64,000 nt of DNA from Basidiobolus meristosporus CBS 931.73 (taxonomy: Eukaryota > Fungi > Basidiobolomycota): assembly GCA_002104905.1 (NCBI GenBank), contig MCFE01000324.1, positions 30,910 to 94,909 of the forward strand. The letters are read 5' to 3'. Every line of letters begins with the position of its first letter. Position 1 is the first letter of the stretch. The translations under genes and the position numbers were made by a program. Positions 8,762 to 64,000 of this stretch are shown here, one piece after another. Under the pieces are notes generated by a model, which saw only the letters and a program-made list of their open reading frames with translations, made no database searches and was not told where the DNA came from.

Positions 8762-9284
8762 AACTAATGATGCTTGAGGACGCAAACCGTTAAGGTTTAA
8801 AGGCTTGAAACAATGGGTAGGCCAGGGTTTGATGGAGTGCACGTTTAGTTGCCAGCAGTCAGGGGGTATATTGAGGTCAGATTCAATTGAAATCAATTAA
8901 ATCCAGAGAAATGCTATCCTGCTATAATGTGAGCTGGATGAAATCCCGATAAATCTTTCAGGAACCCGATAGTTTTATAGGAGTGACGGGAGCAAGTCAT
9001 CGCTTGTTGAAATCAACGTTTATTGTCCGCAAATGCACTACTCTGACTACACAAATCAATCACGAATATCAAAACAAATGGCCAATCAAACCCATCACCA
9101 ACACTGTGGAAACAAGGAGAAGAACAGAGGGAACGTTGTTGACAAGAAGTGCAAAGCAAAGCATCGTGTGACGGCCTAGTTGTAAGGTGACGCAAGCGCC
9201 CAATCACAGTCAGCCATGAGTTTTGTACTTCGATTCATTCATTCATAAATTGGATTATATTTTGATTTGGCTGTATAACCTACT

Positions 9285-11114
9285 CTAGGCCCAGGCATGA
9301 ACCATCAGCTTTTGGACTGCAAGCAAAGCCTGATATCTAACATCGGAGCTTTCGTGAGCCATAAGCTCCATGATGCGTTGCTTGGCCCCAATGTCCTGTA
9401 CGACTTTCTTGCCATTCGCGAAGTGCTTGACGTACTGGCCAACATCGTGAGCGCCGACTGCAAGCACCAGTGGATCATTGGATGTGGCGAGAAGTCGACT
9501 TAGACGCCTGCAATCAACGTTAGACAACTCAATAAGCTAAACAGCTCGGCTCATGCGCTTACTTCAATAGCTCATAATCGTTCTCGTTGAGACGGCTGCT
9601 GTTTTGTGCCCAGAACTGCTCCGATTGATGGGCTGGCGACCATGACAGTTTTCCTGATTCCAGCTCGCTGACATATTCATCAAAAGTGCTGGAAATTCGA
9701 TGTTTAGCGACTGCTCTCCAAAGAACAGGCTTATGCGCTTACGTTAGGCTCTGGAAATTCTCCTCCAGCTCTGCTCTGATATATTCCAAGTCGTCAATAA
9801 TATCAGGATCTGACCACTTTCTGGTGGCAAGGTTCTTGGTGAAATTCAAGATCTTGTGAACCAGGAGAGCAGCCATATTTTCTTCGGGTGCCTTCTCTAA
9901 CAGATTCTGTCAAGTGTCTGTTAGCGCATGGTCGGAAAGAAAGAGGCAGCATGAGCTTACTCTATAAGTGGCAAAGACAACTCGGATCACCTTCTCCTTG
10001 ACAGAGGCTTTGGCCACATTGAGGAAGGCAGGAATGACGTCATATTTCCTTTGGAGAGGACGTCAGTTGTATATTCGACTGCTTAACATCATCACACTTA
10101 CGCATTGACCTCCTCAGCAATATGCTTCTCGAAGGTTAGAAGCCAGAAGCAGAAGATGATCTGGTATTGCATTTGAGAGTTACTGCCGCTTCGTTCAAGC
10201 AAATCTGCCAATCTATTGGCAATGCTTAGCTGCCGCACTGGATTAGGAAGCCGAGGATTACACTTACGAAGAGACCCCGTTACGGGTTTCATAGAATTGA
10301 ACCCTGTAGTTGGAAACACGCAAGAGTGACTCTAGATTCTGCACGGCAATATCGGCTACGTTGGCGTTTTTGCTTTGAAGTTGAGCGGCGATCCATTGGA
10401 AAAAGTCCTTGAGGTCAACCCCAGCAGGCTTCTTCGCAGTACTTCAGAGTTGGAGCACGGTTAGCGCATTTCTGCATAGGGATGATTCTGCTACTTACGA
10501 AAGGAGCGTTGTCAAAATTTTACTTGATTTTAGAGCAAGAAAATCATCATCCTTAGTGAGGCATCTAGAGAAATATTCCATTGTCACTATATAGATTTCC
10601 TGTTGCACTACATCTGCACTTACTTTAGCAACGGGGCATAAGGCAGCTTTGCATTCCCAACTGAGGTCTCATGGAAAAAGGCTGCATTGGTGTCTTTACC
10701 TTCCAGAATATCATCCATGAGTACCAACAGCCGTTGAAGGGTATCTGTGCGAGTGAGTTTATCGGTGAGATTGACCAAAGCTTGGGCCAACACTGCCCCT
10801 TCCTCCTTGTAAACATTCAGTTGTGTCAGTGGCTCATACACAAACCATTTTCGAGCAGTTATTCCCTGTACCTGAGAAACCTCTTGAAGCTTTACACCAG
10901 ACTTATCATAGATACTCAGTATACGTAGTTCTTCCTCGCTGATGAGTCCGAGCCCGCGGCATTCCTACAGGTGAGCAGTCAGTGAGGTGGGATAGTTGAC
11001 TATTTATTGCTAAGAGCAACTTGCCTCCCACAAGACTGGCTTTTGGCGGGCAGCAGAGGTGAGCTCCTCTAAATGAGGGTTTGAGACTAGTGAAGTAGGG
11101 AATATCTCGGCCAT
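9285..11114 (-). CDS. VMA13: V-type ATPase subunit H, multi-exon
   Basis: Q.QYQIIFCFWLLTF, VKEKVIR, LAVGAHDVGQYVK, VRYQALLAVQKLM motifs; first exon MAEIFPTSLVSNPHLEEL...LWE ends at a GC-AG intron. Confidence 0.92.
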
Positions 11115-46276: not shown

Positions 46277-47101
46277 TCAGCAAGCACCTAAATCAGCCCA
46301 TGCGTCAGTGCTACCAGGGGCCTGACCTTGCGTCCACCACTTGGCCTGCCACAAGTGGTCACCATAAATAACCTTGGCGGATTCGGAGTAGGCAGTGTCT
46401 GGGCTCCAGGCCAGCACCCCGTCACAGATACCAGGGTTAGGAGTAGAAGTGGGGCTGACGCTCGATGTAGGGGAAGTCACCTCTGGGCGAATGGTGATGG
46501 TTGGTCGAGCATCAAGCAAGTCCATGCCATCGTACTGGCCTTGGTTTGGGAACTCAGGGATTGTAGGGTATCCTGGCAGGTTTGCGACCAAGAGTTTCGG
46601 GCCACTTATGTAGCCCTCGTCTGAGCCCTTGATCTCGATATCGGCACAGTTCATGTAGTATTCACGGTTGCCCACCTTGTTGATCCAAGCCCAAGCGAAG
46701 ACGACATTCTTGCTGGTGCCAGCGGACTTGGGGATAGGCACCGAATAGTCCAGGCTGCCGATCAGACAATCATCGTAGACAGTCTTCAGAACGGCAAAAG
46801 TCTTCCCTTCGTCGTAGGACACGGCAAACTGGCAGTGGCCACCGCTGTGGGTCGCGACTCCGCCAAGCTTGACCTGGATCTCCTTGCCAGCCTCGACAGT
46901 CTGGACAACCTTTCCTTGCTCGTAGCCCTTGCATGGATAGATGCCCAGAGGATCGACCATGTTGTAGTCAGGAATGCCGGTGAACGTGGGGTTGTATTTT
47001 GAGTGACGCGGAGGCGGCTGGATCATTTCCATGTGGGCTGTGACCACTGCAGCAAGACTGGCCAAGGCAGCGCCGGATTGGAGAAATTTGGAGAAAATCA
47101 T
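46277..47101 (-). CDS. Secreted AA11-type lytic polysaccharide monooxygenase with C-terminal CBM5/12, copy 1 (274 aa)
   Basis: Signal peptide followed by His1 (TA|HMEM), YPCKG, THSGGHCQ, FAWAWINKVGNREYYMNCAD; AW...Y....VIY....WQAKWWTQG CBM5/12. Confidence 0.88.
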   Translation of the reverse strand: MIFSKFLQSGAALASLAAVVTAHMEMIQPPPRHSKYNPTFTGIPDYNMVDPLGIYPCKGYEQGKVVQTVEAGKEIQVKLGGVATHSGGHCQFAVSYDEGKTFAVLKTVYDDCLIGSLDYSVPIPKSAGTSKNVVFAWAWINKVGNREYYMNCADIEIKGSDEGYISGPKLLVANLPGYPTIPEFPNQGQYDGMDLLDARPTITIRPEVTSPTSSVSPTSTPNPGICDGVLAWSPDTAYSESAKVIYGDHLWQAKWWTQGQAPGSTDAWADLGAC

Positions 47102-49901
47102 ACTGGAGGTCAACTCGTTGATGGGGTACACAAGAGAGTAGCCCAAGTATTTATACACACAGTCTGGCCACCCGAGGCTCTCAGCATCACCACGGCGACC
47201 AGTGGGTATGGGCATATCCACACACAACCACCCATTGTGAATGTTACACCGAACTTTACTTATTCCAATAAGTCAGAGTTCTACACTAAGCCTCGAGAAG
47301 GTACCACTCAATTTACCTAGAGAAAATACCGTACTGGCCAAGCCACTTCAGATCAAAGGAGCGATCTATACTTAACAGTGAGAGTCAGATGAACGGCCTA
47401 GAGCGAGCGAAGATCCATCACTATATCTAGAATGTGTAACTATCTCCCTTGGGAGCGTGCTAAACTGGAGTAGGGCTTCCGCAAATGGAAAACGCCTTGG
47501 AGTAAATGCCCAGGACAATCGGCCGAAAATAGCTAAAGAGTTCGGCACTTCGGACCCCGAAAATTCTTCTCCATCCACACTTGCCGCACTTCCAGTCGAT
47601 TCGGTAGCCTGGTATTACTTTGTAGCTTAGAATTTTATGACCCACGCGTGAACTAAACTGATATAGATTATTCATTCAATCATTGAAAAGGTAAATGGGA
47701 TTGTATAAAGCATGGTGTATGTTAACATATTGTTTCAAGTGATTGGTTACGAATCCTGTACAAAATGTTGGTTCCATTTACTCAGGTACAATCAATGGCA
47801 GTACGCCGCTTTTGGACCGCAGAAAAGTCTCCAAGATCGCCAGACCTGCACGGAATCGCTGGACAACAGGAAAATACCCAAATTTTTTGGTAATTTTTAC
47901 AACTCAGATTCAAGGGCTGAATTGATTGGAAGCAAAACCGATATATACTAATCACCACTAATTTGTTGCAAAATAGATATGGTACATTATTCTTATTATG
48001 CCCTGAAGAAAGTGTCGTGGTGATACGAAATAGACCCCATCGGATGCATCCCGATTTCATCTAAACTTTATTTAGCACACCGTCATTTGTGTAACATAGG
48101 ATATTTGATTTCCCAAATCCATTCCAGTAACCGACACAGTTCTGTCAGTATTGGACATGCCAATGATTCCCCTCGTTGAGATAGAAATTCCCTGTATTTG
48201 AGACCCAGTACCTCTGCCCGTTGGAGGTTCTGCTAGGGCTTCTCATATTTTTCTCAATATAGTTAGTAGCAAGCTTTCATTCTGAGGTCGACTGCTTGTG
48301 CCAAGGCATGGAAAGAAGTCTTGCCATGGGGGTAGATTTCGGCGGCTCCGATGACTACCATGGGAAACCCACTGCCTAGCATGTTTTGAAGGCAAACTAA
48401 AGCATTCACGGTGGACACTTCCATTCCGGCCAAGCAAGTTTGGTCGACATTTGCGTTGCGGTCTTTGCAACTAAGGCTCACCGAAATACCGCTTCTCGAA
48501 TGTTCCTGGGCTCTTGCCCGTTAGTGTACCGAGCGATGGGCTGGTGGCGGGGGTTCCACTCAAAGGTCTTAGTTGTGCCAATGAATCCGAGGAGGAGGGT
48601 GGAGATAACGGCTCTTATTGTGAAGTTCAGTCGGTGGTGCTAAACAATCAAGCGACCTGTATGAATTTATAGTAATGTAAGCAATAAGATTCAGGGTACT
48701 TTCGAAACTCCCCACTGTTGTAATTTTATTCATCGCATGACTCAACTGCGTACTTATAGCGTTCCCCCTCTAAGAGATGGTTGCAGAAAATGATTCTGCG
48801 TAGCTTGAGCTGGTTATTCATAAATGCCATAAATTCTGAGGTAATCCACTCCGAGGACAGCGAAGCGGTAACTTGATGAGCCCAATGACTGCGAGCTTCC
48901 CAGGTACACATGCGTAACTTGTATTTTCATCTACCTGATCTGCAGCGCGGGAAGTTTATCGGGTCGAGTGCTGAATCTAGGGCAGGCACACTTAACTTTG
49001 TCTTGAATTGTCCGTCTACTTCGTGAATAACCCCGTATGCTGATCGAAAGTAAGATAGCCATTTAGATGGGTCGCTTCGCGTATATTTCTCATCATCGAT
49101 TGAACAATATTTCGGAGTTCGGGATTCCCCGTTTGAAGAATGATCATCGTATAATAACTCTGTGTCGAATTTTGGAATACCAAGATACACAATAAGGCTA
49201 TAGGAAAGAAGCAATGTCCCAACGCTCCTCTTCCTACATCATAAACATCTAGTTAAGTATAACCCTTATTGGGGTCAACCCTAACTACAAAAAGATTGCT
49301 AAGTCGCTTTTTATATTTGATTGGTTGAATGAAAATTTGTGCCCCAGAAGTGAGTTCAACCCTCACTTTACTACTTGAATGAAATCAAATAATTCCACAA
49401 CACTCTCCTAGTCTGCTGTTGGGAGATATACCTGAGCGCACTATGAGGGGCGATATACCCAAAGTAAGGGCAAGCGGTTAGCAAATCTATTTATACATTT
49501 ATGGGCTTAGAATCGCTGAATCTTAAGAAAACCAGTACTTGCTACGAAGTTGCTGGAAAACACCTGTCCTCTACGTACGAACAGTGTATTTGTGAATATG
49601 TATTAGCGCTAAGCATCATCGCTTTTAGGATATTTCATTTTCTATGTTGCCACAAAAAATTGTTCTGTGAGTACACCAGGCTCTTGATATTGATAGCAAG
49701 TTAAATCAGCTTCTTTCCAGTCCAAACTCACCGTTATTAACCAGAAACTTCATAACTATAAAAATAGTAAGTCATGTGCATTCTACCACCGCCTGAAATA
49801 CATCAAAAATGATATTTGTGTCAATATCTAGGTGTTCATTTGTTTGCTAGTTTTAATTCATTCACATGTAAACTATATGCTTGAAAATGTTGATTTCCGG
49901 C

Positions 49902-50726
49902 TCAACAAGCACCTAAGTCAGCCCATGCGTCAGTGCTACCAGGGGCCTGGCCTTGCGTCCACCACTTGGCCTGCCACAAGTGGTCACCATAAATAACCTT
50001 GGCAGATTCGGAGTAGGCAGTGTCTGGGCTCCAGGCCAGCACCCCGTCACAGATACCAGGGTTAGGAGTAGAAGTGGGGCTGACGCTCGATGTAGGGGAA
50101 GTCACCTCTGGGCGAATGGTGATGGTTGGTCGAGCATCAAGCAAGTCCATGCCATCGTACTGGCCTTGGTTTGGGAACTCAGGGATTGTAGGGTATCCTG
50201 GCAGGTTTGCGACCAAGAGTTTCGGGCCACTTATGTAGCCCTCGTCTGAGCCCTTGATCTCGATATCGGCACAGTTCATGTAGTATTCACGGTTGCCCAC
50301 CTTGTTGATCCAAGCCCAAGCGAAGACGACATTCTTGCTGGTGCCAGCGGACTTGGGGATAGGCACCGAATAGTCCAGGCTGCCGATCAGACAATCATCG
50401 TAGACAGTCTTCAGAACGGCAAAAGTCTTCCCTTCGTCGTAGGACACGGCAAACTGGCAGTGGCCACCGCTGTGGGTCGCGACTCCGCCAAGCTTGACCT
50501 GGATCTCCTTGCCAGCCTCGACAGTCTGGACAACCTTTCCTTGCTCGTAGCCCTTGCATGGATAGATGCCCAGAGGATCGACCATGTTGTAGTCAGGAAT
50601 GCCGGTGAACGTGGGGTTGTATTTTGAGTGACGCGGAGGCGGCTGGATCATTTCCATGTGGGCTGTGACCACTGCAGCAAGACTGGCCAAGGCAGCGCCG
50701 GATTGGAGAAATTTGGAGAAAATCAT
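49902..50726 (-). CDS. Secreted AA11-type LPMO with CBM5/12, copy 2 (protein identical to copy 1)
   Basis: Same motifs; translation from MIFSKF is identical to copy 1. Confidence 0.88.
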   Translation of the reverse strand: MIFSKFLQSGAALASLAAVVTAHMEMIQPPPRHSKYNPTFTGIPDYNMVDPLGIYPCKGYEQGKVVQTVEAGKEIQVKLGGVATHSGGHCQFAVSYDEGKTFAVLKTVYDDCLIGSLDYSVPIPKSAGTSKNVVFAWAWINKVGNREYYMNCADIEIKGSDEGYISGPKLLVANLPGYPTIPEFPNQGQYDGMDLLDARPTITIRPEVTSPTSSVSPTSTPNPGICDGVLAWSPDTAYSESAKVIYGDHLWQAKWWTQGQAPGSTDAWADLGAC

Positions 50727-51775
50727 ACTGGAGGTCAACTCGTTGATGGGGTACACAAGAGAGTAGCCCAAGTATTTATACACACAGTCTGGCCACCCGA
50801 GGCTCTCAGCACCACCACGGCGACCAGTGGGTATGAGCATATCCACGCACAACCACCCATTGTGAATGTTACACCGAACTTTACTTATTCTAATAAGTCA
50901 GAGCTCCACTCTAAGCCGCTAGAAGACCCTATTCAATTCAATAAGAAAAAATACTGCGTAAATTACTTCAGTTCAGAAAAGGGAGCAAAATATACATGGC
51001 AGAGTCAAATGAATGGTCTAGAGTGCGGGAAAACTCACCACTATACCCAGAAAGTGTATATATCTCCCTTTGGTGGAGGGGGGGGGGAAGGGCTACTTAG
51101 CTTCCAAAAAGATTGGACTCGTTGGAGTAAATGTCCAGGACAATCGGCCGAAAATAGCTAAAGAGATCGGCACTTCGGACTCCGAATATTCTTCTATTTC
51201 TGTGTACACCCATACTTCACACTCCATCCTACCAGTGGCTTGCTATTTTGCTCGTATAAATCAGTATCCTTTTTGCCACCATATGTGGAGTAGCTTATTC
51301 CGGAATAGAGATCGTCAGGGAATTAGGGTCGGCAGTTAGAGTTGTTGAACCCACCAAAACCACCATTATAAACGTTTGCGAGTGTAAATATTAGCAGCAT
51401 ATCTTGTCAGTGATAAGATCTGAGGTAACCGGGAGACATGGTGCTCGTAAAGCCACTTAGATTATACATTTACCACCAAGAGGTCTTTCACGAAAGCGGC
51501 GTACCATGTAATTTGGCACTTGGTGTGAATGAATTTACATTCTCGGAGTACGATTGAAAATCCGAACCTTCGACCGCGGTAGGTATATGTTTACAATATA
51601 CACATCAAACACTATGCTACCCCCCAGAGAAAAGTGCAAAGACATCACAGCAACCTATCTACCAGAGAAACCACTCGCTTGAGTCACTCTTTTCACCTAA
51701 ATATTCATCGCTTCTCGTGTATAAATTTAAGTTTCCAATTGTTAAATATTTATTTCCGCTTGTAGTTTGTAGCTC

Positions 51776-54350: not shown

Positions 54351-55256
54351 CCATATCAGCTTTGATCCACATCAGACTTGACTCATCCATCAAAGAAACT
54401 AAAATATCATTCAGATCTGCAGATAACATCCAGGATATTCGACACATATGACAACACTCAAATAAGGACTTTGTGAATGATGCACATTTCCGCTATTTAG
54501 CTATAAAAGTGCAATTATCCTGGGAAAATTCTCAGCCTTCGTATGGAAGTGGGACCAGAGCTCTAAGACAAGACTCTCATTACAGACAATGTATCTTGAG
54601 AGCTGTATTGACTCTGCGTGATATTAGTGGAGTTACGCGGTGCATGCGTTAGGTATGACCATCCAACACATGCTTGGATGTTTTGCCTGATGATCATTCT
54701 ATGGTGAGTTAGAGAAACCGGCGGTCAAGAAAAATCAAAAGGATAAAACACTACTAGCACACCGTCGTCAAGCTAAAACAGGTAGTTTTTGATTCTCTTT
54801 ATATTTCCATAACCTCTCGAATTTCACTTCATTTTCTTCCGCTAGGGCTCATAATGACGATCATCGCTGTCAATACACTAGCCGCATCCCTTGAATTTTA
54901 AGGCTACCGGAGCTAGTACTCTCTACAGGAAATGAAGCCACTCAACTGTTATCTTAACTGTGATTGGTGAAGACCGACTTTTGTTGTGACACAGACATAT
55001 TTGGTGGCTGGTGCTACCTGAACTCTGACTGTAAGTGCAAGAATATAGTTAAAGTAGCTGTTGATAGGTACATTGATTCCCGCAAGCTTTACGCTAATAA
55101 CTTGATTCCTGACTGGTAAAGAAAATAATATGCCCAATTTATATTATAAAACCATTCATTTGTACCTTGACATGAATTCTTACAGACATATGTAAAAGAT
55201 ATTGCATTTGCTCTATTGGAATGAGCCTCATAATTCTTGTGGTGACTAAGAGTGCC

Positions 55257-56180
55257 TAGGGTTAGGGGGGGGGAGACAGTCACCAACAGGTGAAATCTTT
55301 ATTTCAGTTGAAACAAAGAAGCCAGCACTACTGTTGTAGCTTTAATACAATAGTGTGTAACTGAGGGGAATTTGTAGGTAAGTGAATAAGGAGAGATGAT
55401 AGTTCTTCAGTGCCCAAGATATTGTTCAGTGGGAAGGTGGGTAGCAAGAGGGGTAAGAATGATTTGTGAACAATATTAAAGAGGGGAATATGATAAGGAT
55501 TGGTATTCATTATAAAGGGAGTGTGCTGCTTCAGATATTGCTGCCAAAGGTCTGTCAAGTACTTCTGGTAGGCCAGCTTGGGTTTTTCTGACTGCAGAAT
55601 ATAGTGAGCAAATTTCTTGACTTCAGGATCTCCAAGTATAGTTCTCCAGCAGGAGCCAGGTGTAGTGTGGTGTGTTCTCTTCCAGGCCTTAATCAATGGG
55701 TTGTTGCAGTGGTGAAGTCTGAGATATAATCTGGTTCTAAGGTATAGAAGTCTAATCTTATAGAGCATAAGCCCAAAAGCACCAAGAATAGCATGTCTGT
55801 AGGGGCATTCAGGTAAATGAGGCACCAAGGAGGTAATGCACCATACTGCAAAGTTGTCAAGCTTAGTGCAGTCTCTAGAAGTAAGAGAGAGAAGTGGTAA
55901 GCCAAATTCCAGGACAGGGAAGACAAACTGCTTGAGTAGAAGGAGGCAGTTGGGAGCTGAAGTTGTAGGAGGAGTAACAGCCAGTAGCTTGTGGAGTGCC
56001 TGTCTTGCCAGGATAATTCTCTTCTTCAGGTGTGCTCCAGAGTCTAGTCCAGTAGGAAGGAAAGGAAAGCCAAGATATGTAGCAGAAACCTGAGCAGGTA
56101 GAGTGGAGTTCTCCAAGTTGATGGGAGAGCCCAAAGGTACTGTCTTTGCAATGGAAAGCTGGAGATTATTCTTCTGCAGA
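55257..56180 (-). mobile_element. Telomere-associated LINE family A, copy A1 (5'-truncated, ~0.9 kb); innermost array unit
   Basis: C-terminal ORF 55328-56134 matches the 61566-63746 RT ORF; shared 3' motif; joined to unique DNA through TAGGGTTAGGG. Confidence 0.88.
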
Positions 56181-56830
56181 TAGGGTTAGGGAAGGGAAAT
56201 TCACCAAGGTGGGTGAAATCTTTATTTGATTTCATACAAGTCTAACTACAAATAAAGAAGCCAGCTGGGAATAGAAAATTCCCAAAGTAAACAATAAGGT
56301 AAATATGAATAATTCTAAGCTAAAGTTAAAGCAGTATCCCAGAGTACACTGGAGTTCAGGTTCATGGGGGAGTGAAGTAGATAAGCTTGAGAGATATAAT
56401 AATCTTTTAAGAAGTGGGTAACCACAGGTGAAGGGGTGTTTTTGATAAGTGAAGTGAATCTTGAGAGCAGAGATTCCTCTAATGAGAAGGTCTTGTAAAC
56501 TGGAGAATCAAGACACTCTTTAAAGACATGGTCAGTAGGTTCCCAGGAAAACTGGTCAGAGACATTTTGAGAGAATTGTTTAGCAATACTTTTGTCAAGT
56601 ACTACCTCCAGAGTGTGATGGTTGATAAATCTCATGTTAACAATCTTGGATAAGTTGTAACCTTATTGCTTGAGAAACATTCTATGCTCAGACATAGGAA
56701 TAAATTTCACATTGGCTAAGTAGCAGACAGCCCAGTCAGTAGCAGGAGGCAAATCAGAAGTGGCAGGAAACTTTCTTTCAGTCTTGGGAGGAGCAGCAGG
56801 ATGTCTTGAGGAAGCAGGAACAGATTTTTT
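56181..56830 (-). mobile_element. Telomere-associated RT-less coding unit (family C), 5'-truncated, one in-frame stop
   Basis: Frame open from 56830 to the stop at 56315 except TAA at 56663-56665; unrelated to the RT ORFs; ends in the shared 3' motif plus TAGGGTTAGGG. Confidence 0.72.
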
Positions 56831-57130
56831 GGGTTAGGGGGGGGAGACAGTTGCCAACAGGTGAAATCTTTATTTCAGTTGAAACAAAGAAGCCAGCGCT
56901 ACTGTTGTAGCTTTGATACAAGAGTGTGTAGCTGAGGGGAATTTGTAGGTAAGTTAATAAGAAGTGATGATAGCTCTTCAGTGCTCAAGACTCTGTTCAG
57001 TGGGAAGGGGGGTAGCAAGAGAGGTAAGAATGACTTGTGAACAACATTAATGAGAGGAATGTGATAAGGATTGATATTCATCATAAAGGGAGTGTGCTGC
57101 TGCAGATATTGCTGCCAAAGGTCTGTCAAG
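56831..57130 (-). mobile_element. LINE family A, copy A2 (3'-terminal ~300 bp)
   Basis: Near-identical to the 3' end of A3; begins GGGTTAGGGGGGGG-AGACAG. Confidence 0.88.
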
Positions 57131-59246
57131 TAGGGTAGGGGAGGGAAAGTCACTAAGTTGGTGAAATCTTTATTTGAGTTAAGAACTAATCTAAGTACAA
57201 ATAAAGAAGCCAATTAAGAGGTCTAGAACCTCTCTAATAAGTAATCTAATTTATGTTTTGTTTCATCTCTAATGTTTGTTTCAATAAAGTAAAGCTCATC
57301 AGGGGTAAATATAAAATTCAGGGGTTTTGGGGGAAGTACAAATTGTAGATGTTTCTGATCAATATAATCCTAGACTGGAACCCAGCCTGGGATTAGGTGT
57401 AGTAGGAAAGGTGTGTGGACTTGTAAGTAGCTCTGCCACATAGATCTTAGATGGTCCTGAGCCAGTAGTCTTGGTTTCTCAGCTTTTTGAAGTTTTGAAG
57501 CAAGCTCTGTTACTACAGCAGAGCCAACCAGGGTGTGCCAGCAAGAAGATTTCAGGGAGGAGTTAGATTGAAGCCATTGTTTGATGGAGGGGTTATGTGA
57601 TTTCTGAAGTTTGACTAGGAAGGAAGCCCGGAGATAGATCATTTGGATTTGGTATGGGTAGAACCCAAAGGCTCCATTAGTTGCATGGATATAGGGAGAT
57701 ACTGGAAGATAAGGTACCAAGGATCTGATACACTGATGGAGAAATTTATCCAGGCGGTGAAGTTCTCTGGAGGTTAGGGGTATAATGTGGAGACCAAATT
57801 CAAGTACCGGCAGTACATACTGCTTCAGAAGTATAGGGATCTTTTGAATTGGAGTGTCTGGAGTGACTACTACCAGAAGCTTTTTGAGAGCCTGTTGGGC
57901 GAGACGGATCCTATTACTCAGGTGGAGCTTTGAGTCAATCCCATGTTGACAAAACGGCAGACCTAGATATATTGCAGTTTGTTGTGGCAGAATGCTAGTG
58001 TTCTGTATAGTTGTAGTGCATCCAATTGGGACTGTCTTGGAAATTGAGAGTGAGAGGTTGTTGGCAGCCAAGTACTTCTCAATGATGGCAGTGTCTGCTA
58101 TGGGATTAGGAGTAGCAATCTTGATATCATCCACATAAAGAGTCAGTAGTGGATAGGGAGAGTCTGGTGAGGGGCCTTTTGGAAATAAAGGAAAGTCATG
58201 TAGGAATATCACAAATAGTAAGGGACCTAGTACAGATCCTTGGACTACTCCATTTGGAACCTCATAAGTCTCTGATGTACAACTTGGATGCAAAATTTTG
58301 GCTGAGTTCTCACAAAATAGAGAACGTACTAGAACGGTCATTGGTAGTGTGGTAACTGCTAATAGCTTTCTCCAAAGCAGAGCTCTGTCCACAGAGTCAA
58401 AGGCTTTAGTAATGTCAAACAGAATGGTTGGCAATGAGAATTGAAGTGAATGATCATGGCTTAGCACTACAGCCATATCCAAGGAGAGTTTGGGCAAGAA
58501 GCCAAACTGAGAAGGATGGAATGGATATAGTTGAGATTGCAAGGATCTTGCTATTATAAGCTCAAAGATTTTCCGGCAGGTTGGTAGGAGTGAAACTGGC
58601 CGGTAGGAACCTGGGAGTGAGTGTTTCCCCTTCCCTTTGTATAAGGGTATTACATTTGCCTGTGACCAGGCCTTTGGGGTAGTCAATTGTTGGGCACAGA
58701 TAGAGTAGAATGGGAGAAGTAAGTGACTCATTTTGGAGTAGCACACCCGGAGTAGATTGTAGGTAATCAAGTCATGTCCAGGTGCAGTATTTGCAGAAAG
58801 CTTCTTTAAAATTTTCTCCAGAAGCTTTGCTGAAACAAAAATTGGAGATGTTGGACTGCTGGATATGTTACCAGTATGGTAGAAAGGAGGAGTGGGATGC
58901 ACGGTTGAATCAAAGAATATAGGGGCCAGTTTGTCTGGTGATGGTATACTCCTTGCTTGGGATCTCATGGCTTTGTATACTCTTGATATGGACCATGTGG
59001 TGGCATTCATATTTACTAAGGGCAAGGTATCCATGATATGAGCCCATAATCTAGTATGCTCAGTGATCTGTAGTGACTTGGAGTAGGAGATTGCGCTTTC
59101 CAGGAGGTTCTGTGTTTTTGGGTTAGGGAAACATAGGTAGCTGGAATTCAAGGCAGAAATGATGGATTTCCATATAAGTTGGTTTGCAGATGGCTTTTGG
59201 TTGGACTTGGTGGGCAGGGCCCAACTGCCAGTGATTATGATTATGA
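57131..59246 (-). mobile_element. Telomere-associated LINE family B, copy B1 (5'-truncated, ~2.1 kb, complete RT core, premature stop at 57370)
   Basis: TAPGHD, YRPVSLL, QFGF, FDITKAFDSV, GVVQGSVLGP, LYVDD; TAG at 57370-57372 corresponds to TTG in B2. Confidence 0.9.
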
Positions 59247-60420
59247 TTAGGGTCAGGGGAGGGAAAGTCACCAGGTTGGTGAAATCTTTATTTGAGTTAA
59301 GAACTAATCTAAGTACAAATAAAGAAGCCAATTAAGAGGTCTAGAATCTCTCTAATAAGTAATCTAATTTATGTTTTGTTTCATCTCTAATGTTTGTTTC
59401 AATAAAGTAAAGTTCATCAGGGGTAAATATAAAATTCAGGGGTTTTGGGGGAAGTACAAATTGTAGATGTTTCTGATCAATATAATCCAAGACTGGAACC
59501 CAGCCTGGGATTAGGTGTAGTAGGAAAGGTGTGTGGACTTGCAAGTAGCTCTGCCACATAGATCTTAGATGGTCCTGAGCCAGTAGTCTTGGTTTCTCAG
59601 CTTTTTGAAGTTTTGAAGCAAGCTCTGTTACTACAGCAGAGCCAACCAGGGTGTGCCAGCAAGAAGATTTCAGGGAGGAGTTAGATTGAAGCCATTGTTT
59701 GATGGAGGGGTTATGTGATTTCTGAAGTTTGACTAGGAAGGAAGCCCGGAGATAGATCATTTGGATTTGGTATGGGTAGAACCCAAAGACTCCATTAGTT
59801 GCATGGATTTAGGGAGATACTGGAAGATAAGGTACCAAGGATCTGATACACTGATGGAGAAATTTATCCAGGCGGTGAAGTTCTCTGGAGGTTAGGGGTA
59901 TAATGTGGAGACCAAATTCAAGTACCGGCAGTACATACTGCTTCAGAAGTATAGGGATCTTTTGAATTGGAGTGTCTGGAGTGACTACTACCAGAAGCTT
60001 TTTGAGAGCCTGTTGGGCAAGACGGATCCTATTACTCAGGTGGAGCTTTGAGTCAATCCCATGTTGACAAAACGGCAGACCTAGATATATTGCAGTTTGT
60101 TGTGGCAGAATGCTAGTGTTCTGTATAGTTGTAGTGCATCCAATTGGGACTGTCTTGGAAATTGAGAGTGAGAGGTTGTTGGCAGCCAAGTACTTCTCAA
60201 TGATGGCAGTGTCTGCTATGGGATTAGGAGTAGCAATCTTGATATCATCCGCATAGAGAGTTAGTAGTGGATAGGGAGAGTCTGGTGAGGGGCCTTTTGG
60301 AAATAAAGGAAAGTCATGTAGGAATATCACAAATAGTAAGGGACCTAGTACAGATCCTTGGACTACTCCATTTGGAACCTCATAAGTCTCTGATGTACAA
60401 CTTGGATGCAAAATTTTGGC
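59247..60420 (-). mobile_element. LINE family B, copy B2 (5'-truncated, ~1.2 kb, nonsense mutation at 59809)
   Basis: Near-identical to the 3' half of B1; LYADD; TAT>TAA relative to B1; junction TTAGGGTCAGGGG. Confidence 0.9.
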
Positions 60421-60944
60421 TTAGGGGATGAAAGTCACCAAGTGGTGAAATCTTTATTTACTTATGACAAGTATCTAAAGAAGCCAAGTTAATCTGAAGT
60501 TATTCCTAGAAAGCTAGGTCTGAGAGATATCTTCCTGGTAAGCCAGGTCTGAGAGTTGAGAGGCTGAGTGGTACTATATTTCCTAGTTAGCTAGGTCTGC
60601 AAGAGGTTTCCTGGAAAGCCAGGCCTGAGAAGTGAGAATCTGAATATATCTGAGCTAAGTTATACTGGTTTGCGGTAGCTGAATTGTGGCCGGAATGGCC
60701 AGTAGACTGGGGGAACTAAGATGAATTTCTGGGTAATCACTGGCCAAATTTACTGGGCAAATCTGGCCAATTAGCATTTCAAGGATCTCAGCCAATCAGA
60801 GCCTTTACTTTGCCCGATGGTTGATCAAGCCATCTCCCAATGAGCACACATCAATTTATTAATCAAATTTTGCTGGATCCAGGATTTGAACCCACAACCA
60901 TGGGTATGGAAGGGTTAGGGATAACCACAAGGCTAAGTGTTCTT
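60421..60944 (-). mobile_element. tRNA-headed SINE-like unit (family D), copy D1, ~525 bp
   Basis: A box TAGCCTTGTGG (60935-60925) and B box GGTTCAAATCC (60892-60882) at tRNA spacing; non-coding; shared 3' motif. Confidence 0.78.
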
Positions 60945-61470
60945 GGTAGGGGGAGGAAAGTCACCAAGTGGTGAAATCTTTATTTACTTATGACAAGTAT
61001 CTAAAGAAGCCATGTTAATCTGAAGTTATTCCTAGATAGCTAGGTCTGAGAGATATCTTCCTGGTAAGCCAGGTCTGAGAGTTGAGAAGCTGAGTGGTAC
61101 TATATTTCCTAGTTAGCTAGGTCTGAGTGAGGTTTCCTGGAAAGCCAGGCCTAAGAAGTGAGAATCTGAATATATCTGAGCTAAGTTATACTGGTTTGCG
61201 GTAGCTGAATTGTGGCCGGAATGGCCAGTAGACTGGGGGAACTGAGATGAATTTCTGGGCGATCACTGGCCAAATTTACTAGGCAAATCTGGCCAATTAG
61301 CATTTCAAGGATTTCAGCCAATCAGAGCCTTTACTTTGCCCAATGGTTGATCAAGCCATCTCCCAATGAGCACACATCAATTTATTAATCAAATTTTGCT
61401 GGATCCAGGATTTGAACCCACAACCATGGGTATTGAAGGGTTAGGGATAACCACAAAGCTAAGTGTTCTT
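60945..61470 (-). mobile_element. tRNA-headed SINE-like unit (family D), copy D2
   Basis: Near-identical to D1 with the same 5' end; A box 61461-61451, B box 61418-61408. Confidence 0.78.
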
Positions 61471-61511
61471 GGTTAGGGTTAGGGTTTAGGGTTAGGGCTA
61501 GGGTAGGGGGG
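61471..61511 (+). repeat. Interstitial degenerate telomeric tract between D2 and A3
   Basis: GGTTAGGGTTAGGGTTTAGGGTTAGGGCTAGGGTAGGGGGG. Confidence 0.9.
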
Positions 61512-63767
61512 AGACAGTCACCAACAGGTGAAATCTTTATTTCAGTTGAAACAAAGAAGCCAGCGCTACTGTTGTAGCTTTGATACAAGAGTGTGTAGCT
61601 GAGGGGAATTTGTAGGTAAGTTAATAAGAAGTGATGATAGTTCTTCAGTGCTCAAGACACTGTTCAGTGGGAAGGGGGGTAGCAAGAGAGGTAAGAATGA
61701 CTTGTGAACAACATTAGTGAGGGGAATGTGATAAGGATTGATATTCATCTTAAAGGGAGTGTGCTGCTGCAGATATTGCTGCCAAAGGTCTGTCAAGTAC
61801 TTCAGGTAGGCCAGCTTGGGTTTTTCTGACTGCAGAATAAATTCAGCAAACTTCTTGACTTCAGGATCTCCAAGTATAGTTCTCCAGCAGGAGCCAGGTG
61901 TTGTGTGGTGTGTTCTCTTCCAGGCCTTAATCAGTGGATTGTTGCAGTTGTGAAGTCTGAGGTATAATCTGGTTCTAAGGTAGAGAAGTCTGATTTTATA
62001 GGGCATAAACCCAAAAGCACCAAGAATAGCATGTCTGTAGGGGCATTCAGGCAAATGAGGCACCAAGGAGGTAATGCACCATACTGCAAAGTTGTCAAGC
62101 TTAGTGCAGTCTCTAGAAGTAAGAGAGAGAAGTGGTAAGCCAAATTCCAGGACAGGGAAGACAAACTGCTTGAGTAGAAGGAGGCAGCTGGGAGCTGAAG
62201 TTGTAGGAGGAGTAACAGCCAGTAGCTTGTGAAGTGCCTGTCTTGCCAGGATAATTCTCTTCTTCAGGTGTGCTCCAGAGTCTAGTCCAGTAGGAAGGAA
62301 AGGAAAGCCAAGATATGTAGCAGAAACCTGAGCAGGTAGAGTGGAGTTCTCCAAGTTGATGGGAGAGCCCAAAGGTACTGTCTTTGCAATGGAAAGCTGG
62401 AGATTATTCATCTGCAGATACTGGTGGATGGTCTGGGAGTCTTGTTGCACATTGGAGGAGGATATTCTGATGTCATCAGCAAAGAGAGTAACCAGGCAGT
62501 CAGCTGAGAGTCTTGGGAAGTCATTCAGGAAGATGGCAAACAGTATAGGACCAAGCACAGAGCCTTGAACCACTCCATTAGGAACGGAGAACACAGCTGA
62601 TTGCTCACTTGGGTGCAGAATTCTTGCTTGTGGATCCAGAAACAGAGACCTGACAAGGAGGGTGAGAGAGGTACTGGAGAAGCATTGCAACTTGGACCAA
62701 AGCAGATTTCTGTCAACTGAATCAAAGGCCTTAGTAATATCAAACAGAACTGAGGGATACTTGCACTGGAGAGAGTGATCTTGGCTAAGTATGACTGCAT
62801 ATTCCAAGGAGAGGCCAGGAACAAAGCCAAACTGTGCAGGATGAAACTTGAGGGAGTCAGAGTAGAGCTCCTGAGCAAGCAGAAGCTCAAACACCTTTCT
62901 GCAGGTGGGCAGCAGAGATATTGGCCTGTAGGAGCTAGGATCCAGGTGCTTTCCTTTACCCTTGTACAGTGGCAGAACATTTGCAAAGGACCATTCCTCA
63001 GGAGTAGAAAGCTGGGCTGAGCATTGCTGAAACAGTGGAAGCAGAGGTGCAGACATGGCCTTGGTACTAGTCTTCAGAAGCTCATAGGAGATTGTGTCCA
63101 CACCTGGAGCAGTAGAGTTGGGAAGCCTCTTGAGCACATTATGAATTCTCCTTTGATCAAGTGCAAGTGGGATGGGCAGAGTCTTGAAGTCAGGATGAAA
63201 GCCAGGAGTTGAGTACTGCTTTGTAGAGAAGAAGATGTTAGCCAGCTGTTCTGTTGAAGGTAACTTCCTGGAAGAGGGCCTCATTGCCCTGTAGAGTCTT
63301 GATACTGTTCTTGTTATAGAGTTGGAAGATTGCAGAGGCAAGGAACTCATAATATGATCCCAGAGCTGAGTATGCAGAGTGTGGTGAATTGCCTTGGAGT
63401 GGTGTATTGCTGTCAGGAGGAGTTTCTCTGTTTTTGGGTTAGGGAAACTCAGGTAGCTTTGTTGCAGGGCTGAAACAATGGATTCCCATTTTCTTGAGGT
63501 AACAGCAGTAGTCTTGCATGGCAGTGAGAGGGAGGCAGACACCAGAATCAGATGCTTCACAAAGAGCCAGGCATAGTTGAGATCATCTGGCAGAGAAAGT
63601 AGTAAACTGGCAAGCTTCAAGTAGTTCCCAAAGTCTTTCTTCTGATTCTTGGTAGCTTTGTGGGTGAGCACAGTAAGTTTTGGCAGCTTCTTCTTCACAA
63701 CTGGTTGCATAGAAAGGGACCAGGCTGGGTGGTCAGAGGCTCTCAAGGATCCTAGCTCAGCTCCGGA
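61501..63767 (-). mobile_element. LINE family A, terminal copy A3 (~2.27 kb), 5'-truncated and capped directly by the telomere
   Basis: Shared 3' motif at 61506-61561; reading frame runs uninterrupted into the telomeric repeats. Confidence 0.92.
61566..63767 (-). CDS. Non-LTR (LINE-type) reverse transcriptase ORF2, N-terminally truncated, no internal stops
   Basis: STAPGVD, YRPISLL, QFGF, FDITKAFDSV, GVVQGSVLGP, LFADD; N-terminal SDH motif suggests the last strand of an APE endonuclease. Confidence 0.92.
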   Translation of the reverse strand, partial: SGAELGSLRASDHPAWSLSMQPVVKKKLPKLTVLTHKATKNQKKDFGNYLKLASLLLSLPDDLNYAWLFVKHLILVSASLSLPCKTTAVTSRKWESIVSALQQSYLSFPNPKTEKLLLTAIHHSKAIHHTLHTQLWDHIMSSLPLQSSNSITRTVSRLYRAMRPSSRKLPSTEQLANIFFSTKQYSTPGFHPDFKTLPIPLALDQRRIHNVLKRLPNSTAPGVDTISYELLKTSTKAMSAPLLPLFQQCSAQLSTPEEWSFANVLPLYKGKGKHLDPSSYRPISLLPTCRKVFELLLAQELYSDSLKFHPAQFGFVPGLSLEYAVILSQDHSLQCKYPSVLFDITKAFDSVDRNLLWSKLQCFSSTSLTLLVRSLFLDPQARILHPSEQSAVFSVPNGVVQGSVLGPILFAIFLNDFPRLSADCLVTLFADDIRISSSNVQQDSQTIHQYLQMNNLQLSIAKTVPLGSPINLENSTLPAQVSATYLGFPFLPTGLDSGAHLKKRIILARQALHKLLAVTPPTTSAPSCLLLLKQFVFPVLEFGLPLLSLTSRDCTKLDNFAVWCITSLVPHLPECPYRHAILGAFGFMPYKIRLLYLRTRLYLRLHNCNNPLIKAWKRTHHTTPGSCWRTILGDPEVKKFAEFILQSEKPKLAYLKYLTDLWQQYLQQHTPFKMNINPYHIPLTNVVHKSFLPLLLPPFPLNSVLSTEELSSLLINLPTNSPQLHTLVSKLQQ

Positions 63768-64000
63768 GGGTTAGGGTTAGGGTTAGGGTTAGGGTTAGGG
63801 TTAGGGTTAGGGTTAGGTTAGGGTTAGGGTTAGGGTTAGGTTAGGGTTAGGGTTAGGGTTAGGGTTAGGGTTAGGGTTAGGGTTAGGGTTAGGGTTAGGG
63901 TTAGGGTTAGGGTTAGGGTTAGGGTTAGGGTTAGGGTTAGGGTTAGGGTTAGGGTTAGGGTTAGGGTTAGGGTTAGGGTTAGGGTTAGGGTTAGGGTTAG
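63768..64000 (+). repeat. Telomere (TTAGGG)n, about 39 repeats visible, with one TTAGG variant near 63813
   Basis: Direct reading; G-rich strand runs 5'->3' toward the window end. Confidence 0.99.

Follow-up and report, generated by a model that had tools for sequence, protein, structure and literature searches.

A one-way array of LINE-type retroelements and tail-sharing passengers beneath a telomere of Basidiobolus meristosporus CBS 931.73

Retroelements that occupy chromosome ends are known from several lineages. In Bombyx mori, the R1-clade LINEs TRAS1 and SART1 are specific for telomeric repeats, need their 3' UTR for recognition, and reside in a genome that has kept telomerase. Drosophila HeT-A, TART, and TAHRE, of the Jockey clade, occur where telomerase and short repeats are lacking and join one another through oligo(A). 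The Penelope-like elements Athena and Coprina, the latter found in fungi, are endonuclease-deficient and encode a PLE/telomerase-like reverse transcriptase (RT). The eel elements UnaL2 and UnaSINE1 combine unrelated bodies with a common conserved 3' stem-loop tail and short terminal repeats, the accepted basis of trans-mobilization. TRAS/SART elements end in poly(A), are full-length for the most part, and are inserted within long TTAGG tracts (PMC4700185). Known fungal telomere elements belong to the CRE clade and carry a REL endonuclease (PMC12857005), which supports the contrast with MoTeR drawn in a preliminary description of the present locus, and MoTeR arrays in telomerase knockouts were amplified by recombination at interstitial telomere tracts (PMC8381367). 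The system described here is of a kind already represented by TRAS/SART, HeT-A/TART, MoTeR, and Athena, and the one in Basidiobolus is a variant.

The window, i.e., the whole 64-kb stretch of DNA that was analyzed, derives from Basidiobolus meristosporus CBS 931.73. Sequence reading and a repeat finder resolved eight units lying head-to-tail at 55257-63768, in the order A1-C-A2-B1-B2-D1-D2-A3 (Table 1). The minus strand is the sense strand of all eight units, with 5' ends facing the (TTAGGG)n telomere at 63769-64000, and the array, a one-way stack of LINE-type elements and passengers, makes up the final 8.5 kb of the assembled chromosome end. Units are linked to their neighbors by 1-6 TTAGGG-like units plus a G-run; the array proposed in the preliminary description is real, with all eight junctions within a few bases of the positions given there. 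It should be noted that G-run lengths may carry long-read homopolymer error. According to the repeat finder, the three family A copies (starting at 55268, 56839, and 61506) are 90-93% alike, the two of family B (57137 and 59255) are 98-99% identical, and the two of family D (60424 and 60950) are 97% identical. A conserved tail motif, GGTGAAATCTTTATTT, occurs eight times on the plus strand at 55289-61527, and a search of both strands of the 64-kb window found no further occurrence outside the array. Ordered by identity to other copies at loci picked by similarity to A3, the A units, few in number, become younger toward the telomere: A1 is about 96% identical to all other A copies, with no closer copy in the genome, followed by A2 (98.2%) and A3, which is 99% identical to about 50 others. 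In A3 the frame is open over 61566-63768 (735 codons; RVT_1 E 1e-24) and the 3' UTR, at just about 55 nt, is the shared tail; the open frame of B1 matches RVT_1 at E 2e-20.

Table 1. Units, junctions, and terminal tract of the array, in window coordinates
Feature	Position	Strand	Description
Array base	55257-55273	+	TAGGGTTAGGG plus G-run; links apparently unique subtelomeric DNA (ending 55256) to the A1 3' tail
A1	55274-56180	-	LINE family A, 5'-truncated, 3' ~0.9 kb; oldest A copy of the array
Spacer before C	56181-56191		Telomeric-type junction
C	56192-56830	-	Non-autonomous ORF1-only element of ~1 kb, 5'-truncated in this copy; one stop in ORF
Spacer before A2	56831-56844		Telomeric-type junction
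A2	56845-57132	-	LINE family A, 3' fragment, 0.29 kb; identity to other copies 98.2%
Spacer before B1	57131-57143		Telomeric-type junction
B1	57144-59247	-	LINE family B, 5'-truncated; 625-codon open ORF2 remnant; RVT_1 ~58024-58626
Spacer before B2	59248-59260		Telomeric-type junction
B2	59261-60421	-	LINE family B, 5'-truncated, 1.16 kb
Spacer before D1	60422-60427		Telomeric-type junction
D1	60428-60944	-	SINE by layout, full-length, ~0.52 kb; 3' tail of B/C type
Spacer before D2	60945-60953		Telomeric-type junction
D2	60954-61470	-	Second copy of the SINE, full-length
Longest internal spacer	61471-61511	+	About six telomeric units incl. variants TTTAGGG, CTAGGG, and TAGGG, then G-run
A3	61512-63768	-	Terminal, youngest A copy; 5'-truncated inside ORF2; RVT_1 ~62301-62939
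Terminal tract	63769-64000	+	(TTAGGG)n, ~38 repeats, G-strand 5'->3' to contig end; A3 abuts at 63768/63769

Families A (about 4.55 kb) and B (about 3.95 kb) are autonomous LINEs; their ORF2s share 50% identity and each has an RVT_1 match, which bears out the earlier reading of two LINE-type RT lineages. Full-length copies elsewhere in the genome comprise ORF1, an in-frame UGA-CUA stop, and an ORF2 with a divergent, conserved APE endonuclease and an RT. ORF2 is open across 922 codons in 15 copies and ends about 55 nt short of the 3' end of the element; some 50 A copies are 99% alike, most with ORF2 open. In five lineages ORF1 and ORF2 are separated by an in-frame UGA-CUA or UGA-CUC, and the ORF2 product is probably translated as a fusion with ORF1 through readthrough of the conserved UGA-CUA stop. 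In profile searches ORF2 matched RVT_1 (E 2.6e-25) and, under the Pfam cut-off, Exo_endo_phos_2 (E 3.5e-4). The AlphaFold2 model of the endonuclease (pLDDT 82) was matched by Foldseek to the APE/ExoIII family with a probability of 1.0, the best TM-score of the predicted structure (0.70) being to the TRAS1 endonuclease, and an alignment of five lineages retains the catalytic residues N, D (replacing E), Y, D-x-N, D, and D-H. Values of pN are far below pS in the endonuclease and likewise in the RT, for which L1 ORF2p is the best match of solved structure (E 6e-13); the nearest proteins outside the family are unnamed LINE RTs, only about 30% identical. Copies of A, between 36 nt and about 4.55 kb long, all begin at one tail and thus have a common 3' end and variable 5' truncation. 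With their N-terminal APE domain, RT, and variable 5' truncation, A and B are APE-type non-LTR retrotransposons (LINEs). Every LINE copy in the window is 5'-truncated and therefore the endonuclease is not seen there; the elements nonetheless do encode one, as the conserved APE domain of full-length copies shows. The LINE-type RVT_1 together with the constrained N-terminal APE domain rules out an endonuclease-deficient Penelope-like identity. Membership in the CRE clade (MoTeR/FoTeR/Cnl1) is likewise rejected, since Pfam searches of the 917-922-aa ORF2 found APE and RVT_1 only, with no restriction-enzyme-like endonuclease C-terminal to the RT.

The sole ORF of the ~1-kb element C is an ORF1 homolog and no RT is encoded, in agreement with the RT-less coding partner proposed previously. 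A family likewise limited to ORF1, E, was also identified, such that the four families originally recognized (A-D) stand, but not as a total, which is at least five; in both C and E the ORF is an ORF1 homolog that evolves under constraint. The 0.52-kb D has Pol III A and B boxes and only its 3' tail in common with the LINEs, consistent with the SINE of the preliminary description. In the 5' head of D1, box A (TAGCCTTGTGG) and box B (GGTTCAAATCC) lie 50 nt apart and match the consensus at 10/11 and 11/11 positions, respectively, and the 5' ends of D are precise in about 14 copies. ARAGORN detected no tRNA in D, and no Rfam match was found at E<=1; D may be called a SINE by layout only, and its tRNA origin is putative.

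What unites these families is a 3' tail of about 60 nt with two predicted hairpins (10 bp and 5 bp by RNAalifold), a C-run, and CCCTAA-type units. Within it, GGCTTCTTT, AATAAAGATTYCACC, and GGTG do not vary among the five families A-E or in a relative that is 59% identical at the amino-acid level, the latter represented by a 4512-nt contig ending in CCCCCTAACCCTAACC. The C-run and CCCTAA-type units end all of the ~100 junctions examined, none of which has poly(A) or an A-tract on its 3' side, and the 3' end of the elements is complementary to the telomeric G-strand. Since C, E, and D carry the LINE tail, they are proposed to borrow the LINE machinery.

A single tail pattern recovered at least 1,280 tails in the genome, 1182 forward and 98 reverse, so that 92% run the same way as the telomeres of the contigs (telomere pattern: 5967 forward, 62 reverse). 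All 20 further A/B copies lie less than 9 kb from a right contig end, and many such contigs finish in TTAGGG tracts. The eight tails in the window point in the same direction as their neighbors, as do all of the ~100 tails at 50 other loci, which were picked by similarity to A3. Taken with the CCCTAA-type tail, this polarity and location agree with the single telomere-directed mechanism suggested in the preliminary description. Some copies are nevertheless non-terminal, given the interstitial arrays carried by contigs C613 and C781. The assembly is fragmented (1366 contigs), and telomeres are found almost only at right-hand contig ends; the contigs are therefore oriented or partial.

Telomeric units at junctions (n = 95) number 0 in 5 cases, 1 in 50, 2 in 27, 3 in 7, and 4-7 in 6, a median of one, versus perfect terminal (TTAGGG) tracts of 150-240 bp (25-40 repeats). 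Nine of nine arrays based on apparently unique DNA, as judged against ~50 loci only, begin through just 1-4 units. Full-length A and D adjoin the telomeric units at their 5' ends in a fixed GGTTAGGG register. A short-read unitig from the same sample bridges the junction of unique DNA with A1 (55106-55289) at a depth of 242, compared with 251 in the flank, and other unitigs hold many further joints of truncated unit, telomeric spacer, and tail, mostly near single-copy depth (roughly 100-700 versus ~250-290 for unique DNA). As for telomerase, two matches to Telomerase_RBD, the TERT RNA-binding domain, exceeded the cut-off of 25 bits, at 40.5 and 34.7 bits; with the terminal tracts, they are consistent with telomerase coexisting with the elements. 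The earlier proposal of alternation with telomerase is upheld as far as coexistence goes, and actual alternation is a step that we infer.

Among the described systems, the Basidiobolus elements resemble TRAS1/SART1 in having APE and RT in ORF2, an ORF1, canonical short repeats, and a genome that keeps telomerase, and resemble TRAS1 in orientation and in modeled endonuclease structure. Unlike TRAS/SART, they end on the 3' side in the telomeric repeat, occur mostly as 5'-truncated copies, are spaced by 0-7 units, and have SINE and ORF1-only partners. With Drosophila they share terminal arrays in which head-to-tail units all run one way, their 5' ends facing outward and truncated to varying extents; there, the Gag-only HeT-A parallels C and E, and the APE-retaining, RT-encoding TART and TAHRE parallel A and B, and no fly counterpart of D is known. 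The Basidiobolus arrays differ in being TTAGGG-capped, in junctions made of telomeric units, and in the accompanying TERT RNA-binding-domain match, and the terminal (TTAGGG)25-40 tracts and Telomerase_RBD matches oppose a replacement of telomerase repeats as in the fly. Similarly, the 3' ends of Athena/Coprina bear telomeric repeats in reverse complement that can pair with the G-overhang, and these elements also lie at chromosome termini, are 5'-truncated, and have short stretches of telomeric sequence separating their copies. UnaL2 and UnaSINE1 offer the parallel of a LINE/SINE pair whose common 3' tail ends in short repeats; theirs are dispersed elements with non-telomeric repeats, whereas in Basidiobolus the repeat is identical to the telomere unit and the partners as a group are restricted to chromosome ends. 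MoTeR1/MoTeR2, FoTeR, and Cnl1 are likewise fungal and telomere-restricted, forming arrays in which a few TTAGGG units at the 3' side separate the copies, and a non-autonomous partner (MoTeR2) and internalized relics are also known (PMC12857005, PMC8381367). Those elements, however, have a restriction-enzyme-like endonuclease and group with SLACS/CRE/CZAR, and MoTeR has 5' variant telomere-like repeats; the elements of Basidiobolus, an early-diverging fungus, have APE, ORF1-UGA-ORF2, and SINE and ORF1-only partners, and have no 5' variant repeats. The one-way stacking of units that end in the telomeric repeat in place of poly(A) points to a fly-like arrangement, in which elements are copied onto worn tips while telomerase is still at work, and no report of such an arrangement in fungi, or of the system in Basidiobolus, was found in the literature.

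It is probable that these elements form a community of telomere-specialized non-LTR retroelements, added mostly at short or bare ends by RNA 3'-end priming and subsequently capped by telomerase. The autonomous A and B would supply ORF1 protein and endonuclease-RT, and the passengers, namely the ORF1-only families C and E together with D, the Pol III SINE, would use this machinery through the common tail, recognized by the RT. Pairing of a CCCUAA-type RNA 3' end with the 3' end of the G-strand would prime reverse transcription; because the cDNA would prolong the G-strand, the 5' end of the element would face outward and poly(A) would not be copied. Addition would occur mostly where repeats are few or absent, as on tips that have eroded or broken, or on the end of a newly synthesized cDNA, and telomerase would then cap the new tip. 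Pure end-priming needs no endonuclease, and yet the endonuclease is conserved and constrained; it may provide a nick where a free end is absent. These same features, namely catalytic residues kept in five lineages under purifying selection and a top structural match to the TRAS1 endonuclease, together with the TRAS1-like placement of the sense strand on the C-strand and at least a partial telomeric unit at every junction, could also be explained by TRAS/SART-type insertion, in which target-primed reverse transcription within telomeres or spacers starts from an endonuclease nick at one fixed position in the G-strand of duplex TTAGGG and requires no free end. This appears unlikely: the shortness of the spacers, even at unique-DNA bases, relative to the 25-40-repeat tracts favors short or bare ends as the priming site rather than random insertion within telomeres, random nicks in a normal telomere being expected to yield such a base with a probability of ~0.16 per array, or roughly 1e-7 jointly for all nine, and the mostly 5'-truncated copies without poly(A) are unlike TRAS/SART (PMC4700185). 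Insertion into short interstitial spacers would produce a pattern identical to that of end-priming and is opposed only by the age order and by the uninterrupted internal TTAGGG of D, whose single GGGTTAGGG is the site of none of the sampled junctions.

Recombination, in which eroded ends invade interstitial TTAGGG spacers elsewhere and copy the distal array by break- or telomere-attrition-induced replication, with retrotransposition rare, is an improbable main route. The short tracts between units are the substrate reported for MoTeR array amplification (PMC8381367), one locus (L027) has three tandem 120-nt A fragments with one common truncation point, and an identical joint of full-length A and D recurs at several ends. 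Truncation points and neighbor orders nonetheless vary between ends, joints are near single-copy depth, the ~50 nearly identical A copies mostly keep ORF2 open, and RNA-defined precise 5' ends, as well as unrelated bodies with only the 3' tail in common, are signatures of reverse transcription. A fragmented assembly with telomeres nearly all at right-hand ends might instead suggest an assembly artifact, a concern raised with the preliminary description, or ordinary dispersed LINEs and SINEs that happen to cluster where subtelomeres are rich in repeats. The independent short-read unitigs across the joints, including that between unique DNA and A1, the absence of the tail motif from the rest of the window, the strict polarity, and the telomeric unit on every 3' end make either exceedingly improbable.

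Beyond end-priming followed by capping, a hybrid mode of end maintenance in Basidiobolus can be envisaged, tentatively and as a rather doubtful extension, in which the LINE RT, primed at the G-strand or at bare 3' ends, would copy whole CCCUAA-ended RNAs as giant telomerase-like templates, healing broken or critically short ends before telomerase caps them. If so, routine break healing by the consortium could explain tolerance of very many chromosome ends, the system would represent a living intermediate between end extension by retrotransposons and that by telomerase, and D would be the first SINE specialized for telomeres. The genome contains at least about 240 assembled telomere tracts.

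The TTAGGG tract reads 5' to 3' up to the final base of the 94,909-bp contig, thus in true chromosome-end orientation, and eight units lie directly inside it (see the table). The 3' end of each unit is joined to the 5' end of the previous one by a G-run and one to six TTAGGG-like units. A repeat finder recovered the A, B, and D copies of the window with 90-98% identity, and a 16-nt motif of the tail, the 3' end shared by these families, has exactly eight matches, all on a single strand and none elsewhere in the 64 kb. Sequence, repeat finder, and tail motif together bear out the coordinates and makeup of the array reported in the preliminary description. The G-strand side of the array is 27.7% G and 15.7% C. 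The sense strands of the elements are G-poor (13-18% G vs. 24-30% C in 55257-63768, coding regions included), so that the array carries on the high G content of the telomeric strand (GC skew of about +0.3). G-quadruplex enrichment was rejected, the six-unit spacer being the sole scoring site.

Features of the array and of loci sampled outside the window (locations are window positions unless a locus, L, is named)
Feature	Location	Strand	Remark
A1	55274-56180	-	
C	56192-56830	-	
A2	56845-57132	-	
B1	57144-59247	-	
B2	59261-60421	-	
D1	60428-60944	-	
D2	60954-61470	-	
A3	61512-63768	-	
Terminal telomere	63769-64000	+	~38 TTAGGG repeats
Internal CCCTAACCC of D1	60895-60915		GGGTTAGGG on + strand
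Internal CCCTAACCC of D2	61421-61441		GGGTTAGGG on + strand
ORF1/ORF2 UGA, family A	L016:4327-4335		
ORF1/ORF2 UGA, family B	L031:996-1004		
ORF1/ORF2 UGA, relatives	L052:~2112; L053:~905; L054:~1666		
Tandem A tail fragments	L027:280-640		
Facing arrays, contig C781	L055 (G000:C781:52000-61999), ~7249-9297		
Interstitial array, contig C613	L056 (G000:C613:90000-99999), ~5390-9646		
316-aa ORFs (two)	46280-47227; 49905-50852	-	CBM_5_12

The joint between unique DNA and A1 is spanned by unitigs (short-read assemblies) from the same sample at a depth of 242 vs. 251, that is, at single-copy depth. Dozens more joints of truncated unit, short telomeric spacer, and tail occur in these unitigs at roughly single-copy depth. 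An assembly artefact, which the preliminary description had named among the outcomes that would refute its reading, is thereby ruled out. Most joints are individual events and not block duplicates.

All families share about 60 nt of 3' end with one another and with a relative at 59% amino-acid identity, a 4512-nt contig of which begins CCCTCTTTT... and finishes ...CCCCCTAACCCTAACC. This tail consists, in order, of GGCTTCTTT, a variable loop, AATAAAGATTYCACC, a 4-7-nt loop, GGTGA, a C-run, and CCCTAA-type units. RNAalifold predicts that GGCTTCTTT pairs with AATAAAGATTYCACC over 10 bp, with compensatory changes in two pairs, and that TCACC pairs with GGTGA; the AAUAAA motif of the tail, considered as a candidate poly(A) signal, sits within a predicted stem, and the tail was also weighed as a candidate promoter of its downstream neighbour. 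The 3' UTR of the LINEs is essentially the tail alone, and poly(A) was absent from all of the approximately 100 junctions examined. In run X5, from a second isolate that bears this species name, about 35 nt of the tail alone match at 95% or more, at a depth of about 5000 vs. about 20 for long contigs, and tail matches terminate contigs of 8 kb and 13 kb. Since the element bodies have diverged in this isolate while the tail still matches, the tail is the most conserved part.

The anatomy of the families was read from complete copies that lie outside the window. In family A (~4.55 kb), ORF1 encodes at least 309 aa and is followed by one in-frame UGA and then by an ORF2 of 917-922 codons with matches to RVT_1 (E 2.6e-25) and, weakly, Exo_endo_phos_2 (E 3.5e-4). 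Family B (~3.95 kb) encodes an ORF1 of 265 aa followed by an in-frame stop as in A, and its ORF2 is 50% identical to that of A within the part that the window copies retain. A, B, and three relatives found in other public assemblies make up five lineages at 48-63% identity in which ORF1 ends in UGA plus CUA or CUC and ORF2 continues without a change of frame. UGA followed by CUA/CUC is a leaky stop context, which makes a readthrough fusion of ORF1 and ORF2 likely and suggests that such a fusion would be made by programmed stop-codon readthrough, an arrangement that is unusual for LINEs. All 922 ORF2 codons are open in 15 sampled copies and about 50 copies of A are 99% alike, which indicates that family A has been active recently.

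A search of PDB sequences with the endonuclease part alone returned no match at E<=10, and its fold was therefore established through structure prediction. The AlphaFold2 model (pLDDT 82) has an APE/ExoIII fold (Foldseek probability 1.0), and the TRAS1 endonuclease gave the top target-normalised TM-score (0.70). When aligned with distant LINE endonucleases, the five lineages retain the catalytic Asn, Tyr, Asp-x-Asn, and Asp-His, Asp takes the place of the usual Glu, and, as the authors read the alignment, an R-x-x-D-W motif may supply a further catalytic Asp. In the endonuclease pN is far lower than pS, as it is in the RT (dN/dS ~0.15, dS saturated). Matches of the RT among PDB sequences are limited to L1 ORF2p and a group II intron RT; in the protein database, five close unnamed relatives are followed by unnamed LINEs at about 30%, and the ESM Atlas returned generic RVT_1/APE clusters and nothing else. 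An identity as endonuclease-free Penelope-like elements is ruled out by the conserved APE domain and the LINE-type RT of full-length copies.

The remaining families lack this machinery. The sole ORF of C (~1 kb) encodes a 243-aa homologue of ORF1 that is 33% identical to that of A. A second ORF1-only element, E (266 aa), has no copy in the window and was for that reason missed in the preliminary description, whose four families thus become at least five. In both C and E, divergence is far greater at synonymous than at non-synonymous sites. The ORF1 family had no match in Pfam. The model of the C ORF (pLDDT 74.5) has a beta-alpha-beta-beta-alpha-beta domain between a long N-terminal helix and a helical end; its fold matches are weak and RRM-like only (Prp24 Z 6.2; Foldseek E>0.04), L1 ORF1p was not among them, and an RRM-like core may be taken as a lead only. 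The SINE D (0.52 kb) is mostly full-length with a precise 5' end and carries motifs for box A and box B of Pol III promoters, separated by 50 nt. An identity of D as a tRNA was rejected, as neither ARAGORN nor Rfam recognised a tRNA in it and the promoter boxes are all that speaks for one.

A single tail pattern has at least 1,280 matches in the genome (89.5 Mb, 1366 contigs), 92% of them forward. The (TTAGGG)8 pattern has 5967 forward and 62 reverse matches, from which about 240 telomere tracts are estimated. This 99% forward bias reflects telomeres lying mostly at the right end of contigs, and hence either contigs that mostly have one telomere and are oriented or chromosomes that are half assembled. 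All 20 further A and B copies with a measured distance lie less than 9 kb from the right contig end, and many of the contigs that bear them terminate in TTAGGG tracts of 150-240 bp. On contig C1034, copies occur at both ends and are correctly opposed. The expectation that copies would map to chromosome ends in one polarity held in location for these 20 copies and in orientation for 92% of tails; it failed for interstitial arrays on two contigs, which are reminiscent of the internalised relics known from MoTeR (PMC8381367). One, in the middle of the 218-kb contig C613, is a one-way, six-tail degenerate array with CCCTAA units and may be an old chromosome-end relic, through fusion or internalisation. 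The other, on C781, comprises two arrays whose 3' (proximal) sides face each other about 300 nt apart, and is a very small structure with two ends, an ancient rearrangement, or else a mis-join. Additionally, at L027 three tandem family-A tail fragments of about 120 nt share an identical 5' truncation point, with a telomeric unit after each, and could reflect either a tandem duplication at this site or template switching that recurred at a single position.

How the units reach the end can be considered from spacers and ages, statistics that rest on about 55 loci. Among 95 junctions, 5 have no telomeric unit, 50 have one, 27 have two, 7 have three, and 6 have four to seven, as opposed to the 25-40 repeats of terminal tracts. 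In all nine arrays that start on DNA unrepeated among the sampled loci, the first unit is joined via one to four telomeric units. A serious rival is nicking of the telomere by a TRAS-like endonuclease, and the conserved endonuclease, which counts against pure end-priming, keeps it so. Random nicking in a normal telomere would leave long proximal tracts, however, and spacers of mostly one or two units instead fit ends with few or no repeats. Addition at ends is also favoured by the fixed GGTTAGGG register after the 5' ends of full-length A and D, by the single GGGTTAGGG in the tRNA-like head of D, and by age order. None of the sampled junctions lies at that internal GGGTTAGGG, an observation that speaks against insertion wherever TTAGGG occurs. 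A1, the proximal copy, has 96% identity to every other copy, and the genome contains none that is closer to it; the values are 98.2% for A2 and 99% for terminal A3. In this small and biased sample, the outermost copies thus appear youngest, as expected of terminal addition. Recombinational amplification via interstitial spacers (PMC8381367) probably contributes; it could not create RNA-defined ends or families that share a tail.

It follows from the polarity of the arrays that the first cDNA strand prolongs the telomeric G-strand, with which the predicted CCCUAA-type end of the RNA could pair much like a telomerase template. Ends with few or no repeats might be tips that have eroded or broken, or a fresh 3' end left once a cDNA is complete. 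As for TERT, whose presence the preliminary description had raised, a Telomerase_RBD match exceeds the family cut-off, and this match and the perfect terminal tracts fit the coexistence of telomerase with the elements. The proposal that LINEs, a coding partner without RT, and a SINE share one telomere-directed mechanism is supported, with two corrections, the presence of an endonuclease and the larger number of families.

Telomere-specialised retroelements have been described from only a few lineages (flies, silkworm, Giardia, Chlorella, rotifers, and Magnaporthe/Fusarium). The system of Basidiobolus has APE-LINE machinery in common with TRAS (silkworm) and TART (flies), a telomere-complementary 3' end with the endonuclease-less Penelope-like Athena/Coprina, a Gag-only partner with HeT-A (flies), and short-spacer arrays with MoTeR, yet it misses defining features of each. 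Telomere-associated retroelements named in reviews are TRAS/SART, HeT-A/TART/TAHRE, GilM/GilT, Zepp, MoTeR, Tx1-1_ACar, and Athena (PMC10088271, PMC4700185), and the known fungal ones (MoTeR, FoTeR, and Cnl1) belong to the CRE clade and have a restriction-like endonuclease (PMC12857005). Within the literature searched, no description of such a system for Basidiobolus and no telomere-specific SINE was found. An APE-type LINE, a telomere-complementary 3' end, and Gag-only and SINE partners, features so far separate, here occur together in an early-diverging fungus that is telomerase-positive, has hundreds of chromosome ends, and holds over 1000 copies. This is a natural system for asking how an RNA 3' end selects a chromosome tip, what role a retained endonuclease has in end-targeting elements (a question shared with TART/TAHRE), and whether end-healing by retroelements can drive karyotype fragmentation.

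Elsewhere, the window encodes an AICARFT/IMP cyclohydrolase with 100% identity to the protein of B. meristosporus CBS 931.73. Two 316-aa ORFs 3.6 kb apart have identical CBM_5_12 scores, and the pair resembles the product of a recent tandem duplication, close to the chromosome end, of a gene for a carbohydrate-binding protein.
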